A DNA stretch of 63,690 bases, the filler included, from Dicyema japonicum (Eukaryota > Animalia > Dicyemida): NCBI GenBank assembly GCA_011109175.1. It is 13 parts of 13 records of this genome, joined end to end, with 100 filler letters (N's around TTAATTAATTAA, not from the genome) between each part and the next. Parts side by side here need not be neighbours in the genome. Positions count along the whole stretch, not along the records: positions 59,015 to 62,110 come from RDEW01000347.1; 12 more parts are not named here. One strand, written 5' to 3'. Positions 7,300 to 63,690 of the stretch are shown piece by piece. The number at the start of each line of letters is the position of its first letter. Position 1 is the stretch's first letter. The notes under the pieces were generated by a model. That model was given only the letters and a program-made list of their open reading frames with translations, was not told where the DNA came from and ran no database searches. The position numbers were made by a program, and so were the translations under genes.

Positions 7300-9180
7300 C
7301 ACACAAAAACACTTATCAGAGAAAGAAATAAATTAAAGAAACAAAATGAATTATCAAATGACGATTTCCAAAAAAATGAAATTCTTGAATATACAAATTA
7401 AACAAGTTATTCAGTCTAGAATCAAGAAGCGATGGACATCACTTATTGATTCTCTATGGCCAAATACATCCGAGACGCTGATATGGACGAAAATTAAATA
7501 TTTGAGACGTTGCAATGAAGGCTCTGAGAAAGTCCTCCGCGGACAAGGATGTAGCAACATCGACCCAAATATTTTAATGAAGCACTATGTCGCGATCAGC
7601 CATAAAAAATTTCTCGAAGGAACGCAGAGTCTACAAGAAGAAGTTGTATCCATCATATGATTTGATTGTCTTTACTCCACAAGAAGTTCGAAACGCAATC
7701 ATGGATGCCAAAAACTCCCGTTCCCGAGGTGCTAAAAATGTCTCGATGATGGAACTGAAACACCTTGGTGAAAAAGCAACCAAATTCCTATCATACGTTT
7801 ATACTATATCTGTGAACAATAATATGCTACCTTCTATATGGAAGAAATCTATAATTCTGCCAATTCGGAAGCCAAACAAACCTGCAAACGATCTCTCTTC
7901 TTATCGTCCAATTGCAATACTATGTGCAGTGTCCCGAATTTTAGAAAAATTAATCTTAACACGAATCAAAAATATTGTACCAAATCGAGTATTCCAGCAT
8001 GGATTCCGTGAAAACCATTCTACTACGACTCACCTAACAAAATTAACTCAATATATATCCGATGGATTTTCCTATCCAAAACCACATAAAAGGACCATAG
8101 TGGCTTCTACTACGACTCACTTAACAAAATTAACTCAATATATTTCTGATGGATTCTCTTATCCAAAACCACATAAAAAGACCATAATGGCTTCAATAGA
8201 CTTGAAGAAAGCATTCGACTCCGTTTCCCGGACGCTGCTTATAGATAAAAATTTCTAACACTCTTATAAATCCAAACATTAAAAGATGGCTGTCGAACTT
8301 TTTAAGTGGAAGAAGAAGACAATTGATGTCAGACAACAGAAAATATAAATCCCGTTTATTGCCGAATGGTGTTCCTCAAAGTTCACCTCTCTCCCCCCTG
8401 CTCTTCAACCTGTCCACCAATGACCTTCCCACCAATGACGATCCCAATACATTAATATTTTCATACGCAGATGACATTGTTCTTTCAACGAGAGACTCTA
8501 ACTATGAGGAGGCAGGGATAAAACTTCAAAGTTATATTAGTATGTTGGAACATTGGCTCACATCAAATCGACGGGAAGTTTCTACAGGAAAGTCGTTTAT
8601 AACAATTTTCTCTACATATAGAAGATCATTATACTCTCCCAAAATCAAATTGTTTAGATATGAATAAGTTTCCAACAATACTAGGATTAAAGTTGGATAC
8701 TCTCCTGACATTCGGCCAACATGTCGATGACGTTATTACCAAAGTCAGGAGGAGGACCAACATATTGAAAATTTTGTCCCGATCACCAATCGGGCACAAC
8801 ACCTTCTTACTACAGAAAATTTGCAATCAATACATACTGCCAGTAATCGAATATGCATGTCCCTCTTGGAGCTCGATGATTTCTGAATCGTCGTCTCAAA
8901 AATTAGAAGCCGCGCAACTTGCTGCCTTAAAAATAATAAATAAGAAAACTGTGGATAACGTATTGAATGTTAAAGAACACCTAAGGTGGAGAGTGAAGTC
9001 ATTTCTACAGTGGACAACAAAAACCGGCTGTCCGCTTTCACTCTCTATATCTGACTATTTAGTAAATGCGGGAAATCTATGGAGAATGAAAACGTCCCCG
9101 TTTCTACCAAATCTGTTGGATCTTCGCGGACCCCGAACGATAGCCAGAACTCGGAAAACCGGGAACACTTAGTTAGTAGT
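7300..9180 (+). mobile_element. Jockey/I-like LINE ORF2 3' portion (RT plus C-terminus), frameshifted, with an internal 87-bp duplication
   Basis: WKKSIILPIRKPNK, SSYRPIAIL, QHGFRENHST, IDLKKAFDSV, GVPQSSPLSP, SYADD, ILGLKLD, EYACPSW. Ends GNT-TAG. Confidence 0.92.
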
Positions 9181-9615
9181 TAACTTTTAACTTTTTCTAA
9201 TCCGGTGATCTTGGGGTAAAAAAAACAAGTGACCCTTGTGGGTTGGTTCGATGAGAACCTTCTTGAAGAAGGAGAGATTTTGCGGATTATTCCATGTTAT
9301 TTGAGCGAATCTCACTCGCTATCCGGAAAGGAAATAGCCACGCAGTCAGGGTAGCCGCTATATACAACCGTTTACTCGCTTTTCTTTGTGGTTAATAAAT
9401 CAATAATGAAATTAAAAGTAATTAAATATAAATAAAATAATAATAACAAGTAAATTAACTAATTAAACGTATTTTGATCCAGATTGTTGGTAATCTCTTT
9501 TCTTTACTCGCTTTTCTTTGTGGTTAATAAATCAATAATGAAATTAAAAGTAATTAAATAGAAATAAAATAATAATAACGAGTAAATTAACTAATTAAGC
9601 GTATTTTGATCCAGA

Positions 9616-10560
9616 TTGTTGGTAATCTCTTTTCTTCTCTTAGAAGAAGAGCGACGAATCGGGGCTTTTGTCGACAGAGTTCGGACATGGTGCGATAGGA
9701 GAGGGATGAAACTATCCACAGAAAAATCCAGTTACTTGCGAATATGCAGGCTGGATCGACACCAGANGTTTAAAAGAGGAGTGCCGCAGGGGTCTATTCT
9801 AAGCCCTCTATTATTCAACATATTTATGGAAGACTTTCCTTCTCCACAAGACGTTAGGACCAAGCTGATGATATATGCGGATGACATCTTAATCCTAGAC
9901 TCATCTCTGAAGTCCTACATCTCTGAGCGACGAATCGGGGCTTTTGTCGACAAAGTCCAGGTTTGGTGCGATAAGAGAGGGATGAAACTATCCACAGAAA
10001 AATCCAGTTACTTGCGAATATGCAGGCTGGGTCGGCACCAGAGAAAGTCCTATACGCTACGGATACCTAGAGTCTCTAGCCTGTACTACCTGGGGATTGC
10101 AGTGGATGGAAGAGGATCGTATCGGAAGGACATCGAGGAGCGGAGGAAGAAGGCCGTTCAAGCGATGTTCTGCACCAGAAAACTAATGTTGGATGTCGAT
10201 ACAATGCTCTTTATCTTCCGAATTGTGATTCTTCCAAGACTGATTTACGGATGCGAGGGATGGTTTTATACTCCCTCGAGAGAAAGGATTCTCGCTCGCC
10301 TGGAGAAAACAAGGCGAGCGGCGATAAAAATATCTCTGGGGAGGAAATTGCATGAAAGCCTAACTGAGGAAGAGAATAACCTTGTCAGGCCAGTAAAGAT
10401 AGATATCCAAGTATGGTTGGGTAACCAGCTTTACAATACGTAGTAAAGCTGGACGACTAAAATGGAGATGGGATACGTGTGAAGTGTCCAGGCCGCAAAG
10501 GCGGACACGATTAAAAATCCTTTTAACTAACTCCTTACTTACTTTGGAATAAATTTGATT
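9616..10560 (+). mobile_element. LINE RT C-terminal half with intact 3' UTR hairpin and (TACT)/(GATT)-type tail
   Basis: GVPQGSILSPLLFNIFM, IYADD, YLGI, LIYGCEGW. 3' end GTGTCCAGGCCGCAAAGGCGGACAC is shared with the copy at 54110-54451. Confidence 0.88.
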
Positions 10561-17149: not shown

Positions 17150-18175
17150 AACATGGTTTCAGGAGAGACCAGTTTACATCAACAATCCTTACCTCATTGA
17201 ACCAGTCCATTATTGAAGGCTTTTCTACAAAACCACATCTAAAATCTGTTTTATGCTTCCTCGACTTACAAAAGGCCTTCGATTCTGTATTCAGAAAAAT
17301 TCTTACTCAAAAAATATTTAGACTATACATCAACTCGAACATAAAATTATGGCATTCAAATTTCCTCAGCGAAAGAAGAGGGCGTGTGTGCTTGGATGGA
17401 ATTCGATCAGTCTCAAGATTACTTCCAAATGGAGTTCCCTAAGGCTCTTTCTGTCTCCTGCCTATTCAACTTATACCTTTCCGACATTCCAACTAAGTTC
17501 TGGAAGACTTGCAAAAAATATAAGAACTCTTGTTACAAATTCAAACTTGGCTACACCAAAACCGGATGAACATATCTCCCGGAAAATCCTCCACCACTCT
17601 ATTTACCTCGGACAAAAGGCTCAGAAGATGTACCGTGGATCTATTCCTGGACAACGAAAAATCTTTTCTACGATGAACCCTAAATTTCTGGGGGTCACTT
17701 TTGATACCCACATGTGTTTTTCTTCCCACATTGAGAAGACCATTGGAACTTGTCAGAGTAAAATTGGTTTAATCAAAACCATATTTGGTGGAATAAAAAG
17801 CCAAGCAATTTATCGACCGACTATCAGTTATGCCTGTGCAGCATAGGGAATTAATCTATCGTGGACCAACTGTCTTAAAGTTGATAACACTCTATGTCGA
17901 GCTGCGACTACCATAATGCATATCGCAAAGCTGAACAATATTCTACCCAGTCCCTTTGACCACCTTATCAAGCAAAACGGCAAGAGTTTTTTAACCCTCA
18001 TGCAGGACCTGTAGTCGACAGACCGTCCTGTGTCAAGCAGTTTCCAGAAGCACATCACCCCAGTTGGTCTTCTCACGAATACTGTCCTCCGCCCGTATCG
18101 TGACTTTGTTAGGTCAAATGTCCAACATCGGGAGAAGCTCAGAAAGCTCATCAGGATTGTCGGGATCACTTAATT
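17150..18175 (+). mobile_element. Degenerate Jockey/I-like LINE 3' kilobase, ending GIT-stop
   Basis: LDLQKAFDSV, SRLLPNGVP, PKFLGVTFD, IYRPTISYA. Terminus IVGIT-TAA. Confidence 0.85.
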
Positions 18176-18472
18176 AATTCCAAGAGATTAACTATTGGTG
18201 TTTTTTTTTGTGAAGATCACCGAACCGGACCTACGCCTCAGGAAGCCTTATGAGACTAGACTTCAGATCACGGGAAGGTGGTCCTGAAAATGAAGGCAGC
18301 CATCCTGTACGTTCATGCGCGGGCACGAAAAAAGAACATCGGACAAAAATGAGGTCTCTGTTAGAATGCATCGGGATCACGTGATAATTAGTTTGGTTTT
18401 ACCGTGGTTTTGGGTTAAATAAATAAAAATAAAACAATAAGTAAAATTAATTCCTTAATATGCCCGTCAAAT

Positions 18473-19000
18473 TCAATCTTCTCTTCTTGGGCCAACCCCT
18501 ATAGTCTTTATAAGCTTGTTCAGGTCGCTGCATACCCCACATTCAGAGACTACCCTAGGTTGACATTCCCTGCCGTCTTCCTCGTCAACAGGCATCGATA
18601 CTCTATGCCTCTCCTCAGCTTGCATACTATCCAAAAACTTCCGTAACACTAGCGTCTGTATATGAGCTTTGACCCTCTCCTCTACCTTGAGGGCATCCAG
18701 GTACCTTTGAAGAATCTGGAGACAATTCCATCCCAAGTGATAACCACAGGGATTATTTTCACCTTTTCGAAATGGATATTCTCAAGTTCGTTCGCCAGTA
18801 GGTCATACTTGTGAAACTTTTCTACCTTGACCTGCTTGAGGCAGTTTTGGGAAGTAATCTCAATTTCAACAAGAGTAATCGTATTTTTTGTCTTATCGTA
18901 AACGAAAATGTCGGGTTTGTTATTCGTTACAGCTGTATCCGTACTGATTCGTATCTACACGAATCTCCACAAATTTATTTGCGACACAGATTATAACTGA
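18473..19000 (-). mobile_element. R4/Dong-like RLE non-LTR retrotransposon 3' end
   Basis: TNNKPDIFVYDK...ITLVEIEIT...EKFHKYDLLANEL...IIPVVITWDGIV...KAHIQTLVLRKFLDSM (PD-(D/E)xK nuclease). Confidence 0.8.
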
Positions 19001-19655
19001 TGGGTCTTCAGTTTCTTAGTTTTTCTTATTCCATATTGACGGAAGAGATTTAGGTGTAATTATCTAACCACTTCATTATGTAATAGAGAATGGGTTTAAA
19101 GATTCAGGACTCCTTCGTAGAAAAGCTAAAGCTGTCGTATCTCTAATTTATGAAAGTTTTTGGCTGAGAAATACTCCCGAAGTACATTGGTTTCCAATTT
19201 TGATATTAGAATTGCAAATATCAATGCGAGAGGGAATGCCTTTTTAAACTCTACAAAACAATACGAGTAGCTATTAAGATGATCGAAAGCATTTGGAAGA
19301 ATTTCTCGAATTTCACTTCGGAGGAGACTTAAAAGTAATAGGCTATTGGAGAAGATTCTAAACATTAAAAAAGGATTAATGGGTGATATAACATAACATT
19401 CATCAATTTTTTCCTGTTTGAATTAACTTTGTATCAGTGTTCCCGATTTTCAGAATTTATTATGATTACACCCAATTTTCTCGAATCCGCCTTCAAATCT
19501 CCTAAACATGTAATTTATAAAAAATCCAAATTGACGAAGATTCGAAATGAATTGATCACTTTTTTCAACCAAAAATATTTTTTAAACAACGTCACTTGAA
19601 TGTAAAAAATAAAAAAAACACAAAAACATGATTTATCGACAAAAATATGAATTTA

Positions 19656-19978
19656 TCAATCATTACGAAAATCGTCACGTAATAATCTTATGTATTCTTC
19701 TAATTCCCTCGATTGTCTTAAGTTTTCTTCCTAAAATATAATGGAAAAATACATAATCCCTGTGAAGATCTGCTAAACGTCCATAGTAGCTTTCTTTACT
19801 ATAAAAAGCATATACCCGTTAGCTCTAAGTTACTTGTGTCAACAACTTCCAATAAAAAGTTTACTTCTCTAATGTCCATTTGTATTTCAAGAATATATTG
19901 AGTTATATGCTGATATTCGTCTTCCGATTTCCTTAGTTCATCGTTATTATTCTCATCGTGATGGTTTGACGAGTTCAT
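19656..19978 (-). CDS. Orphan 92-aa acidic, coiled-coil-like protein; 3 exons (introns 19794-19815 and 19731-19752, both 22 nt)
   Basis: ATG 19978; GT-AG introns of the same size class as those in conserved genes restore an open frame MNSSNHHDENNNDELRKSEDEYQHITQYILEIQMDIREVNFLLEVVDTSNLELTESYYGRLADLHRDYEENLRQSRELEEYIRLLRDDFRND-TGA, with AT-rich flanks. No homology recognised. Confidence 0.6.
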
Positions 19979-20599
19979 CCTTATTTAAGTTACTAAATGT
20001 TACGTTTAATTATTGCTCATAATTGTATTGTGATTAATTTATATAATTATTTATTATTTTTTATTTTAATATAAATATAATTTTGCAACGACTTTAAGTG
20101 GGGAAAGCNNNNNNNNNNNNNNNNNNNNNNNNNNNNNNNNNNNNNNNNNNNNTTAATTAATTAANNNNNNNNNNNNNNNNNNNNNNNNNNNNNNNNNNNN
20201 NNNNNNNNTCGAAGACTGATTATGTTTGGCACGTGTGTGCTGAAGGTCATGAGGGTGTCAAATGTTCCTCTCAGAATTTTAACTTGTTGCTTGTGTGGGA
20301 GAGTAGTTTCAATTTGTTCGTAGCTGTCGTAACATACATTGAAAAAATAAGGCATGGCAAACCTAAGTAAAATGTGATTATCTTTCTACAAAAAATAATC
20401 TAAAAATTTTAAATGGGATTTATTGTGGAAAAGTCATGACAACATTAGGTAAAATGACATAATATTTTGTGGCATGACCCTTGTAAGAATCACTGCTTTT
20501 AAACGATTTTTATTTCATCAAGCTCCGGGTATTTTAATTTTTTACGAGTTTTTAGTTTAGGATTTCTGTTCTTGAACTGAAATAAAAGCGATCCTGCAT

Positions 20600-20943
20600 T
20601 CATTTACATTGCATTGACTGTCCTTGAGATTCTCTTTTAAAAAATAGAAGAAAATATGTTGCATACCGTCTGACATGAAACTGATTTATTTGTTTCTGTA
20701 TACCACAATATTTCCACTTTTTGAGCAATTGAAAGTCTGGTGTAGTCTCCAACAGAAACATTCCACACATGCTTGCTTTAAATTATTTAAATTTTTAAAA
20801 ATATTTAAAAAAATAAAAATAATTTTTAAAAATGTTGGCAAATTTCATAATTGGCAAATATCATTGAAAAATAAAAAAATCGATAAAATGGCAAATTTCA
20901 GAATTGGCAAATTTAAGAGTGGCATATTTGAAAGAGTTTACTG
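20600..20943 (-). mobile_element. pogo/Tigger-like element 5' end: TIR, TGGCAAATTT subterminal repeats, HTH start
   Basis: TA|CAGTAAACTC terminus at 20943; five TGGCA(A/T)AT repeats; RLSIAQKVEILWY resembles the psq-type HTH. Confidence 0.6.
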
Positions 20944-58914: not shown

Positions 58915-59249
58915 NNNNNNNNNNNNNNNNNNNNNNNNNNNNNNNNNNNNNNNNNNNNTTAATTAATTAANNNNNNNNNNNNNNNNNNNNNNNNNNNNNN
59001 NNNNNNNNNNNNNNACACAGGAATATAGATTGACAAAGAGTTACATAAACGATTTTTGAAATTTGAAATATTTAATTTAACTCATTTTAAAATTATAAAT
59101 ACTTTTGAAAATTTATTGGGATATTAAAATAAGGAATAATAATATGAAAACTAAAATTACTTTATTCCTTTTGATTTTAAAAGCATTCTTTTGGCTATAA
59201 TATTTTAGCAATATAGTTAGATTTTTGGAGGAAGCACATTATAAAAAAT

Positions 59250-59393
59250 TTACTTACCTGGTCGTGATTTACTGTTATCATTTAGACAGTTTATCTATTG
59301 GATTGCCGCCTATTGCACTGCAGGTCGCTTTCCAGTACGGACCGTTCCATACGGGCTGTCCTACGGCATATTTTTTCAGTGTGCTTTTGCACT
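59250..59393 (+). ncRNA. U1: U1 spliceosomal snRNA (divergent, ~144 nt)
   Basis: ACTTACCTGG at 59252-59261. Closing helix GTCGT/ACGGC. SL1 GAT-ACTGT[TATCATTTAG]ACAGT-ATC. SL2 TATTGGA..CCT[ATTGCACTGC]AGG..TCCAGTA with the U1A loop. SL3 GGAC-CGT[TCCAT]ACG-GTCC. Sm-like ATATTTTTTCAG. SL4 GTGC[TTTT]GCAC. Order and spacing match U1. Confidence 0.88.
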
Positions 59394-59559
59394 TTTATAA
59401 TTTTTCAATAATAATAGATTTTTTTTAATAAAGTGCACCTGATTTTGCTCGACTGTAGTTTTTGAGATATGTCTCGGAGATTTACTTGGTGACCTTTTAA
59501 ATAATTGACCCGATCTGACGTACTAGGACCCGTAAGGTCTTCCTGTGTGCCGAGAGTTC

Positions 59560-60712
59560 AGCTTAGAAAGACATTATGAAACTAACCATCGAATGTTTTA
59601 CAAAAATAGAGCAAGCCAATGTAGCTTCTGTTACTGCGAACTATGAACTCAGCCGAATGGTCCCAATGGGTGACAAATCTTACATTGAAGGAGATTTATA
59701 AGACATTGATGGTAAGAAATCTGATATTGTTTGCCCATGGAATACACAGTTATGTCAGAACATTCCATTAACCAGGAACACTTCTGCTGGACAGATTGAT
59801 TATCACAGGATGATTTGAAACAACGGTTGAAGACTACATCATCTAAATTTGTGAACACCTTTTTTTGCTATTGATGATACCGTTGACATCACTGAAGTAG
59901 CACAGCTTGCAGTTTTTAGCAGTGTCTATGACAGGGCAGTGATACATTTCAGTCAGAACGAGTGATTTTATAATCTTTTAAAAATNCCGCCCCCCTTCAT
60001 CAGAGTCTCTTGTGATCCACAGTTGAGTTTACTATTTAGATAATAATTTTTATTTAGACACTGCTGCTGGACAGATTGATGATCACAGGATGATTTGAAA
60101 CGACGGTTGAAGACTACATCATCTAAATTTGTGAACACCTTTCTTTTGCTATTGATGATACCGTTGACATCACTGAAGTAGCACAGCTTGCAGTTTTTAT
60201 CAGTGCCTATGACAGGGCAGTGATACATTTCAGTCAGAACGAGTGATTTTATAATCTTTTAAAAATAATATCAATTGCTTTTTCCAGAAAGTTGGTCTCT
60301 CGATTATGAGAGGTAACTCCCATCGCGTGCTCAATGCCTGCAGGCCATAATGGAGAGCTGTAATAACAACTTTACTTTAATAATAAATTGTTATATTTGG
60401 CTTAGTGTCATCGTAATATAGTCGTTGTGGTAGGATTACGAATTATTAAATACACTGTCTCTCGATTATGAGAGGTAACTCCCATCGCGTGCTCAATGCC
60501 TGCAGGCCATAATGGAGACCTGTCATAACAACTTTACTTTAATAATAAGTTGTTATATTTGGCTTAGTGTCATCGTAATATAGTTGTTGTAGTAGGATTG
60601 CGAATTATTAAATACGCTTCAATAAGATTACGGTGTTTTTCAGATTTATTAGTGTGGCCCGCTTGTATGCTCAAATTATCTTATGCGGCTCCTGGAGCCT
60701 TTTGAGTTTGAN
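59560..60712 (+). mobile_element. hAT Charlie/Buster (GTF2IRD2/EPM2AIP1-type) transposase remnant with terminal repeat at 60640-60712; CRE tips inserted at 60295-60540
   Basis: ERHYETNH, EGDFI, IPLTRNT, SFAIDDTVDITEVAQLAVFI (FSLALDESTDI..AQL.IFI motif); end GTGGCCCGC...TTTGAGTTTGA. Confidence 0.8.
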
Positions 60713-61147
60713 AATTTTTTAAATATATTTATACCAATATTATGATCCACGTTCAAACCTAATCTCATTTGACAACATGATCATATTTTATTGAAAACTT
60801 TTATAACAAATTACTGAATTTATTTTGGCGAATTCATATATCATTTCCCTTCTTTTTACCAGAAGAATTTATATTAATAACTTTACTGTTGTTATTCAGT
60901 GTCGGTATGCTTTATGTTATTACAAATAGAAAGGAATGATGTTAGTGAGGTCGGTCAAATTGCATTCAACGATTTTTTGCCGAAATCTCTTAAGAGATCT
61001 GCGATGAGAATTGAAATTATAAGAAATTTTATTGGAGTTATTGAACGTGAGAAACTAATGAAAAATACTTTCTTTTACGAAGTAAACTCATCTTTTCGAA
61101 CTGTGCCTGATTTAGTTATCAGATATTGTCTGGGTAATGTCATTTAA
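60713..61147 (+). CDS. Nuclear hormone receptor ligand-binding domain, C-terminal half; 25-nt intron 60905-60929; one frameshift in a T run near 60787
   Basis: QYYDPRSNLISFDN resembles the LBD beta-turn (RYD..TDS..FAN). FLPEEFILITLLLLFSVERNDV resembles the helix 8-9 motif (L..EE..LL.A..LFS.DR.GL). A helix 10-12-like tail follows. The fragment starts at a single-n join. Confidence 0.55.
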
Positions 61148-63690
61148 CAGGACGTGAGAAACTAATGAAAAATACTTTCTTTTACGAAGTAAACTCATCT
61201 TTTCGAACTGTGCCTGATTTAGTTATCAGATATTGTCTTGGTAATGTCATTTAACAGGACTTTTATTTTGTAAATTTTAAATTTCTTAAATAAGACATTT
61301 TATTATTGCAACAGGCATAGTCTAAACGAAATATACCCGAATGATAGATAAAACGACAAAGTGGTAGTGGGACAGGATATAAAGTAAGGAGGAGCTGATG
61401 GTTACAAGTCAGTTAACTACGGTAGTTTGTCAATGAGAAAGTCCATGAAAATTATTACAATACTAGACACCTGCAGAGGGCCTGTCGGGAGCTTCGATTA
61501 TTTGACAAACGACGTTAGATTCTTCTGAGACTTCCACAGCCCACACTTGTAGGGCATGTGTTCTCAATTCTGTTGACCGACTGCTATGCTGTTCTTCTGA
61601 TTCTTCATTAATCATTGTTTTGCATGTATTCTCAATTCAGTTAAACAAAAAAAATTTTAAATTAAAATATGTACATTTATCTACGAGTTATGGTGGCACA
61701 AACATACAACATTGAGCTTTAATGGGTACATAGATTAGTCTCCCACAAATAACTATTGAAAAGTCCTCCATATCATTCAATTATACTCCATTTCTGTTTG
61801 CCCTCATCAACGTCAGTATGACCCAAAAACTCCTAATCAAAGGGAATACAATCCCCACTAACATGAATACACATATATTAAAAATCATCACAAATTTATT
61901 TGATTCCAATTTGATCGACAGGAATTGCTTGTATTTAATGGGAGTATTGTGGTGGAGAGTATTTGACAATAACAAGCTGACACGTGTATTGGTTAGACAG
62001 TCTTGTAGTTTGTCATAATAATTTGTCAGCATTTCTGTGAGGTTGTCAATTATAGATAGACCGCCATTGATGGAATGTCAGTGGAGGGAGTATCCTCACA
62101 TAATACAACANNNNNNNNNNNNNNNNNNNNNNNNNNNNNNNNNNNNNNNNNNNNTTAATTAATTAANNNNNNNNNNNNNNNNNNNNNNNNNNNNNNNNNN
62201 NNNNNNNNNNACAGGATTTGTCAAAATTATATCGTAAACTAAAATTTCGGCTGTGTAAATTAAGGCTGCACCATTTTTTTAAATAGGGATGTGGCTTATC
62301 AAAAGCTTGAATCGCAAAGTTACTTCTTCCGGTGTGATTATGGTCCCTCTTTAAAATCCAGGGTTAACACAAAATCAATGACTTTTTCCTTATTCGCAAT
62401 TTTTAATTGTACATTCATAATCCATTACTGTCTTTATTTTTCAAAATGTTAATTCTTCAAGTAAAATACAAATAGACTTTTCTATATACTGGTAGTTTGG
62501 ATGAAAATGTTAAAAGTCAGTAAATTAGTTTTCAGAGTAAAAAATCTTCTTTCTAAGATCTCCCACTATGTCTTTCAGATGTATGGCTGATCTCATCTGA
62601 AGGGCACTGATTTCATCTGATTAATCAGTGAATTCTGAATATAGATTGTATGCTTTCTTCAATAGAGATCATAGGATTCTCAGTTTCTTGATAATTGGAT
62701 GGTTCTACAAGTCATTTAAGTTAGTTTCGGCACTTTTAAGTTCGCTACGTGAGTCCTTGAATCTTGTTCTAAAGAATAAAGTGATAATCGGAACTTTGAT
62801 AATTTCTCTTTTATATTACTTATTAGATTACATTATTATTTGACCACGTGGTGTCATGTGGCTACTTGATTGATGATTTCTCTTCCCTTAAGTGGCGACA
62901 TCAAATCCACCTGACTCAGAGACACTCATTACATCTCCATTCTGCTACTTAAATGTTATTAAAATAATTGAAATAAACAGATTTAGTTCTCTCAGCCACA
63001 TAGAATTGACATTGTTCGGAGGAAAGTTCACTTTCTCTGGGAATGAAGTATTATTATTTATATTGCAAAATACAGTGTAATCTTACAGTTAAGTGTCCCA
63101 AATTCGTCTGTTTTCTTCATTAAAAAAACTTATTTATTAAATGTCAAAATTGGTTAACAATAGTAGAATTATCAAAATAATATATGAAATTCACATCACA
63201 GATAAATTAGCATATCAAGCTGAAATATGAATAATGTGATCTCGATAACTTAAAGAACAAAATCGACCACCTTCACTCAAAGACCTGTCCATATGGTGCA
63301 TATTACTTATTCGAACTATAAAAATCTCAGTTAAACACTATTTTAGATAATTGAATTTTTCGATCACTAACAAAATCGACCACCTTCACTCAAAGACCTG
63401 TCCATATGGTGCATATTACTTATTCGAACTATAAAAATCTCAGTTAAACACTATTTTAGATAATTGAATTTTTCGATCACTTAACATTAATTACTGATAC
63501 CTAATGTCAAATCGATCACCAAAATCTTATTTGAACATTTATATAAAAATCAAAATTTCACTTTTACTAATTTGGGGACTTGCCCAGAAATTTCCGTCCC
63601 CAATCGGTTTCCTCTACAAGGATCAAAGTAGGCACTTCCATTCGGCAGTGGTTGCGGGAACTGAGATCACCTAACTAGTTAACATTTTTT

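Follow-up and report, generated by a model that had tools for sequence, protein, structure and literature searches.

The window, a stretch of 63,690 nucleotides joined from 13 records of the Dicyema japonicum assembly GCA_011109175.1, contains a real and unusually compact U1 snRNA gene at positions 59250-59395, within the piece at 59015-62110 that comes from RDEW01000347.1. The predicted RNA of approximately 145 nt would pair with 5' splice sites through its ACUUACCUG 5' end, would carry recognisable U1-70K and U1A loops on SL1 and SL2, respectively, and would have an Sm region, rich in U, that separates helix H from a short hairpin at the 3' end. Nearly all of its loss in size falls in that hairpin, SL4. 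We consider it likely that the gene is not only real but also functional and typical of its lineage, and it is probably a member of a small multi-copy U1 family in a fast-evolving eukaryote. We infer that the gene is expressed and that its RNA enters a U1 snRNP which serves in the recognition of 5' splice sites.

When the piece at 59015-62110 was scanned with Rfam covariance models under permissive settings, U1 (RF00003) was the sole match, with a score of 48.5 bits and an E-value of 2.1e-10 on the plus strand, spanning model positions 1-166. This search, by which the earlier note had proposed to check its U1 assignment, thus gave a significant match even though the score lies under the Rfam gathering score for RF00003 (69.5). 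The missing bits were mostly accounted for by SL4 columns that the alignment skipped, 15 in all, and by the AT-rich stems. By our own linear scaling of the E-value, the match would still be significant across 10^8-10^9 bases. The unconstrained minimum free energy (MFE) fold contained the four-way junction and the 3' hairpin at -42.3 kcal/mol (z -3.3), and 0 of 200 shuffles were as stable. Both the model alignment and this fold agree with the earlier statement that all of the U1 elements fold in order, and every motif quoted with it was found in its place when read directly from the sequence. The three-motif pattern ACTTACCTG..ATCANNNAG..ATTGCAC occurred once in the piece, compared to 0 expected from 100 shuffles. 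A chance resemblance in AT-rich DNA could be argued from the sub-threshold score only, and it is in effect refuted by the E-value, the three-motif pattern and the stability of the fold. The features of the gene are collected in Table 1.

Table 1. Coordinates of the U1 snRNA gene and its parts, counted along the window.
Feature	Position	Strand	Remarks
U1 snRNA gene	59250..59395	+	Predicted length ~143-146 nt; RF00003 full model and fold z -3.3
5' splice-site-pairing ACUUACCUG	59252..59260	+	Identical to Rfam consensus positions 3-11; unpaired in MFE fold
Helix H, 5' strand GUCGU	59261..59265	+	5 bp with 59363-59367; agrees with model helix
SL1, 3 + 5-6 bp, UU/UU internal loop, loop UAUCAUUUAG at 59276-59285	59266..59295	+	Model and fold
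SL2, loop AUUGCACUGC at 59312-59321 (U1A site)	59296..59337	+	Model and fold
SL3, 8 bp as two blocks	59339..59361	+	Model and fold
Helix H, 3' strand ACGGC	59363..59367	+	MFE fold
Single-stranded Sm region AUAUUUUUUCAGU	59368..59380	+	Six-U run then C-A, not G-G/G-A
SL4, GUGC/GCAC at 59381-84/59389-92, UUUU loop	59381..59392	+	4 bp in assembled copy
Read-contig differences, 59391 A>G (most) and 59393 T>A (all)	59391..59393	+	Keep or add SL4 pairs

The end of the RNA that would pair with splice sites is conserved, as had been proposed, and exact: ACUUACCUGG was found at 59252-59261 and includes the complete ACUUACCUG. SL1, SL2 and SL3 form a four-way junction closed by helix H, both in the model alignment and in the MFE fold. 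The AUUGCAC of the U1A site is also exact (59312-59318), in keeping with the earlier description of this loop as near-canonical, and AUUGCACU in the SL2 loop is the same as in the consensus and in a metagenomic U1, L001, that is described below. The hallmarks of a pseudogene were not seen, since the gene showed no truncation, no uncompensated stem mutations and no damaged functional motifs. The single-stranded motifs have been kept while the diverged stems still pair, which argues that U1 is a constrained RNA and not a decaying copy. Between the window and L001, three of the five upper SL1 pairs and four of the six SL3 pairs were changed on both sides and were still paired, in a comparison of two sequences only; in the MAFFT alignment of these two sequences, the consensus fold was reliable for SL1 and SL3 only.

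The loop of SL1 was found to be unlike that of human U1, as the earlier note had pointed out: CGA is replaced by UUU and G28 by U (U..UUU in the window versus G..CGA in human). Seven of the ten positions of UAUCAUUUAG agree with GAUCRYGARR, the U1-70K loop motif (PMC5499648), and positions 1, 7 and 8 differ. In the human complex, C31 and A32 are stacked on the two RNP phenylalanines of U1-70K, Asp177 is bonded by U30, A29-A36 is the loop-closing pair, A35-G38 are stacked, loop 3 of the protein holds C33 and G34 mainly through stacking and phosphate contacts, and G28 is flipped out (PMC4383343). By the human numbering, A29, U30, C31, A32, A36 and G37 are retained in UAUCAUUUAG; the changes are at G28, G34 and A35, together with C33 to U, at which the pyrimidine is preserved. 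The proposal that binding of U1-70K had eroded was not supported, since the bases that are stacked on the RNP phenylalanines, that bond Asp177 and that form the A29-A36 pair are all retained. Judging by sequence, we read the loop as altered, not eroded, and the change would most likely be a lineage variant to which U1-70K still binds.

When JGI metagenome contigs were searched for U1s with the exact AUCAUUUAG loop, one contig, L001, was found; the same pattern gave no matches in the genome-contig and viral-contig collections. The L001 U1 (Ga0066842_10020227, 88-248) scored 80.1 bits and is identical to the Dicyema U1 in its 5' end, in the AUCAUUUAG of the SL1 loop and in AUUGCACU. In contrast, it has a long SL4 with a UUCU loop, a AAUUUCUGG Sm site and a GC-rich sequence, and belongs to another, unrelated eukaryote. 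Since AUCAUUUAG is also found in this otherwise standard U1 with its full-size SL4, the change in the SL1 loop is not tied to tiny introns, contrary to what had been suggested. In the L001 contig, the U1 lies approximately 590 nt upstream of the start of a eukaryotic 18S rRNA gene (840-1197) on the same strand, which suggests that, in that organism, U1 and the rDNA unit are linked.

In the Sm region, AUUUUUUCAG was found at 59370-59379. When the nonamer was taken from the model alignment, it read A-U-U-U-U-U-U-C-A (AUUUUUUCA) against AAUUUgUGg, and when the register was shifted by one base it read UAUUUUU followed by UC. Of the A-U(4-6)-G-purine form, the A and six U are in place and the trailing purines are absent in both registers. 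The site had previously been described as C-ended, and in the model alignment there are indeed no purines directly after the U-run. The first seven bases of the human AAUUUGUGG correspond one-to-one with the seven Sm proteins, and G132 and G133 occupy the extra pockets SmD1-SmD2 and SmF-SmE (PMC4383343). It is plausible that the U-rich heptad of the window would be compatible with seven Sm proteins in either register. In the Sm sites of microsporidian U1, deviations occur at positions 6, 8 and 9 (PMC5499648). The U-run followed by C-A-G bears a loose resemblance, which we mention as a lead only, to the U7-type site AAUUUGUCUAG, by which Lsm10/Lsm11 are recruited instead of SmD1/SmD2 (PMC12360213).

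The 3' terminal SL4 is present, with 4-7 bp and no G-C-rich lower stem, and it is short in every version. In the assembled copy the stem has 4 bp (-5.4 kcal/mol), compared to 6-7 bp (59378/9-59394/5; -8.0 kcal/mol) in the version supported by reads, so that the assembled copy carries the weakest version. The earlier account of a 4-bp SL4 was right about the UUUU loop and about the miniature stem of the assembled copy, but most copies have 6-7 bp. The 4-bp stem is a property of the assembled copy, because all of the read contigs have A instead of T at 59393, with G instead of A at 59391 in most. SL4 of the window consists of one short stem with a loop-closing C-G, followed by G-C, U-A or U-G, and G-C. 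Changes in the loop and bulge of SL4 are tolerated, and the SL4s of fly, worm and fission yeast work (PMC4233244). The UBL tail of SF3A1 reads the GCG/CGC upper stem, and swapped pairs strongly reduce binding (PMC8833184). Because both a lower stem and the GCG/CGC block are missing from SL4 of the window, a contact of the human type with SF3A1 would be unlikely. With the loss in size concentrated in SL4, bridging between U1 and U2 through SL4 would probably be weakened, lost or done differently. The claim that such bridging was lost owing to tiny introns, put at ~23 nt in the earlier note, is plausible for SL4 and unsupported for the 70K loop, and we hold it to be doubtful; the remodelled spliceosome of the earlier note is a reasonable hypothesis, not a finding.

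Four sequencing runs from one sample were aligned to 59015-62110 as contigs, and were treated as DNA because the whole piece was covered, including the upstream flank of 18% GC. The piece was found to be multi-copy sequence, with up to 1,477 contigs at 80-100% identity and with sharp repeat boundaries in the contigs near 60280, 60463-8, 60521 and 60711. The summed depth (X2) was 17,307-20,726 over the U1 body, compared to 7,536-9,978 in the bins of the 5' flank, 6,708 in the 3' flank and 3,662 for the contigs reaching 59393. The U1 body was therefore approximately two- to threefold deeper than the adjacent flank bins and approximately sixfold deeper than the contigs reaching 59393, and this excess indicates that the body is common to several loci with different flanks. 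Among the base differences listed, none that was well supported fell within 59055-59390 (266 lower-ranked ones, for the whole piece, lie beyond those listed). Position 59326 may be variable, given a unitig break at 59325/59327. At 59054 and 59393, the window departs from all of the read contigs of the sample. Approximately 10 differences were seen in one contig, nine of them listed (59391-59484); none lies 5' of 59391, and the part of the U1 body that this contig covers (59327-59390) is free of them. The assembled piece may derive from a different isolate, or copies may have been combined in it as a mosaic.

Two of these observations count against a functional, lineage-typical gene: the assembled copy mismatches all of the read contigs at 59393, so that it could represent a minor variant or contain errors of assembly, and it lies in a multi-copy repeat setting, where snRNA pseudogenes also occur. 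The gene could then be a variant or pseudogene copy, that is, a non-functional or minor U1-like lineage among repeats, with a working and more canonical U1 elsewhere. This would agree with the model score under the gathering threshold, with the non-consensus 3' end of the Sm site, with the inter-copy variation to which 59393 and the break at 59325/59327 point, and with flanking DNA that is repeat-rich and without coding signal; many U1 variants and pseudogenes are, moreover, common in animal genomes, according to two reports (PMC10870369, PMC10645366). However, the U1 is full length, all of its stems are paired, its functional loops are intact and its stem differences are compensated. The variants at 59391 and 59393 leave SL4 paired, and a comparison of the copies shows higher conservation and abundance for the body than for the 3' flank. 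Within the 3.1 kb of 59015-62110, no other U1 of a more canonical kind was found. We consider a variant or pseudogene copy unlikely, and a functional member of a small U1 family is the reading that we prefer.

The piece around the gene has a GC content of 33.9% and consists largely of repeats. No credible coding frame was found in it under the standard, ciliate or euplotid codes; a ciliate reading was not supported, TGA is frequent, and a tRNA-derived SINE was rejected, as no tRNA was found in the piece. A search for homologues of the open frame across the U1 gene, that is, for U1 copies mis-called as proteins, found none, and the translations of five ORFs of the piece had no exact database match. 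A degenerate second U1 was considered downstream (TTTACTTGGTGACC near 59479), and its local alignment was no better than those of shuffles. At 60295-60618, a 162-nt unit is present as a tandem pair with 96% identity, and both copies have a short hairpin (CTCTCGATTATGAGAG). No other sequence of the piece was as abundant in the reads, where its summed depth was up to 57,283 (X2) with many loose ends at 60280, 60352, 60463-8, 60521, 60541 and 60711; it had no Rfam or tRNA match and resembles a repeat family of the dispersed or satellite type. At 61045-61260, a 107-nt unit is likewise duplicated in tandem with 99% identity, and a duplication of approximately 208 nt (59778-59985 and 60058-60266) was found with 96-98% identity, a spacing of 280 nt and a 1-nt indel between the blocks.

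The consensus of the 3' box of animal snRNA genes is GTTT-N0-3-AAARNNAGA. An exact match to it, GTTTTACAAAAATAGA, was found at 59595-59610, where approximately 0.05 chance matches would be expected by a rough estimate. At 200 nt downstream of U1, the match is too distant to act for that gene, and it adjoins a repeat boundary at 59592 that was seen in read joints. Another small RNA between U1 and 59595 was looked for, and the interval gave no Rfam match and no fold signal (z +0.9). On the 5' side, TATAAAAAA at 59240-59251 abuts U1, and the canonical +1 base is U (59250). The nearest purine upstream of 59250 is A at 59248, and a start at that base would give a leader two bases beyond the usual AUACUUACC. 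Approximately 30-55 nt upstream of U1, there is a second TATA-like stretch, CTATAATATTTTAGCAATATAG. No promoter element could be assigned in the upstream flank.

If the sequence were a U1-derived mobile repeat, or had come from the host or a contaminant, its features would be uninformative on the splicing of tiny introns. The hundreds to 1,477 contigs with sharp repeat boundaries fit such an origin, as do the runs, which resemble a mix of parasite and host (28 million contigs and 2.2 Gb in X2). Cephalopod contamination has been stated for the 2019 assembly of Dicyema sp., which is highly fragmented, with an N50 of 942 bp, a largest contig of approximately 20 kb and uneven coverage (PMC6543705). 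In contrast to a high-copy SINE, however, the depth excess of the U1 body is just approximately two- to sixfold, and nothing is missing from the U1, which has an Sm site and a terminal hairpin of its own and ends without a tail. From a host, given the general conservation of U1 in animals, a canonical U1 would be expected. In addition, the GC content and repeat richness of the piece fit the published D. japonicum genome (36.7% GC, 49% repeats). Together with the large, fragmented run, they suit a dicyemid better than the myxozoan Henneguya, which has 29% GC, and transposable elements are described as relatively few in myxozoans generally. A mobile or foreign origin is very improbable.

Among animals, introns of 22-27 bp have been described in myxobolid myxozoans and in Dicyema, and a 2026 survey of such ultra-short introns, which covered U2 and U2AF and not U1, treated the recognition and splicing of animal introns of 20-27 nt as an open question (PMC13644364). 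According to the same survey, the 5' splice-site signal in these animals is reduced to GTa (PMC13644364). No description of the U1 of dicyemids or myxozoans was found in the literature searched. If the gene encodes the working U1 of such an organism, its 5' end would be fully canonical despite a minimal splice-site signal, and the part that has shrunk would be the module that bridges to U2 in human. This would direct attention to the UBL tail of SF3A1, loop 3 of U1-70K and the pockets of the Sm proteins that take up the trailing purines. As a variant copy only, the gene would be ordinary. We advance only tentatively, and without expecting it to be the likelier outcome, the further reading that an animal-like parasite with introns of approximately 22-27 nt uses this gene for its working U1. 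In that lineage, the SL4-SF3A1 bridge would have been given up, because introns so short leave no room for the U1 and U2 snRNPs side by side, and the 3' contacts of the Sm site would have co-evolved. If this is true, an animal would have arrived by convergence at the outcome in the chlorarachniophyte nucleomorph.

When compared with canonical U1 (RF00003; 164 nt in human), the U1 of the window shares ACUUACCUG, helix H, the four-way junction of SL1-SL3, the AUUGCAC loop, the AUCA..AG frame of the SL1 loop, the GCAUA before the U-rich Sm region and a terminal hairpin. In contrast, it is approximately 20 nt shorter and below the gathering threshold, its SL4 has 4-7 bp with UUUU whereas the canonical one is a two-part G-C-rich stem with UUCG, and its Sm nonamer is AUUUUUUCA versus AAUUUGUGG in human.

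Reduced U1s have been described in several lineages. The U1 of the Bigelowiella natans nucleomorph is expressed and has 102 nt with a highly shortened SL IV; the introns there have 18-23 nt and no 5' consensus, yet the 5' motif of U1 is conserved, and the parallel between small snRNAs with a short SL IV and very short introns has already been drawn for this nucleomorph (PMC6461891). It is far smaller than the U1 of the window and has no apparent U1A site, whereas the latter has retained SL1-SL3 in full, with U1A and 70K loops that are near-canonical. The genome setting also differs, since the B. natans nucleomorph is gene-dense and the genome of the window U1 is repeat-rich. In microsporidia, which have very short introns and a reduced spliceosome, the U1 of Encephalitozoon and Nosema has been validated by RACE; as in the window, the cloverleaf and ACUUACC are kept and positions 8 and 9 of the Sm site deviate (PMC5499648). 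In contrast, their SL1 and SL2 loops have no recognisable 70K and U1A motifs and SL3 is shortened, whereas in the window these loops are largely kept and it is SL4 that is shortened. SL IV is absent from the U1s of the Guillardia theta nucleomorph and Giardia lamblia (Hudson et al. 2012, as relayed in PMC6461891). The G. theta U1 has no apparent 70K site either, whereas the U1 of the window retains a short SL4 and a 70K-like loop.

The U1 of the window shows the pattern of these reduced U1s: the cloverleaf and the 5' end are kept, SL4 is shortened and the 3' end of the Sm site is changed. For nucleomorphs, microsporidia and Giardia, a short or absent SL4, SL1 loops that diverge and changes at positions 8-9 of the Sm site have all been published previously. 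The reduced U1 of genomes with tiny introns, or of otherwise reduced genomes, is a grade and not a clade, and the U1 of the window is a milder form of it than the U1s of nucleomorphs, microsporidia and Giardia.
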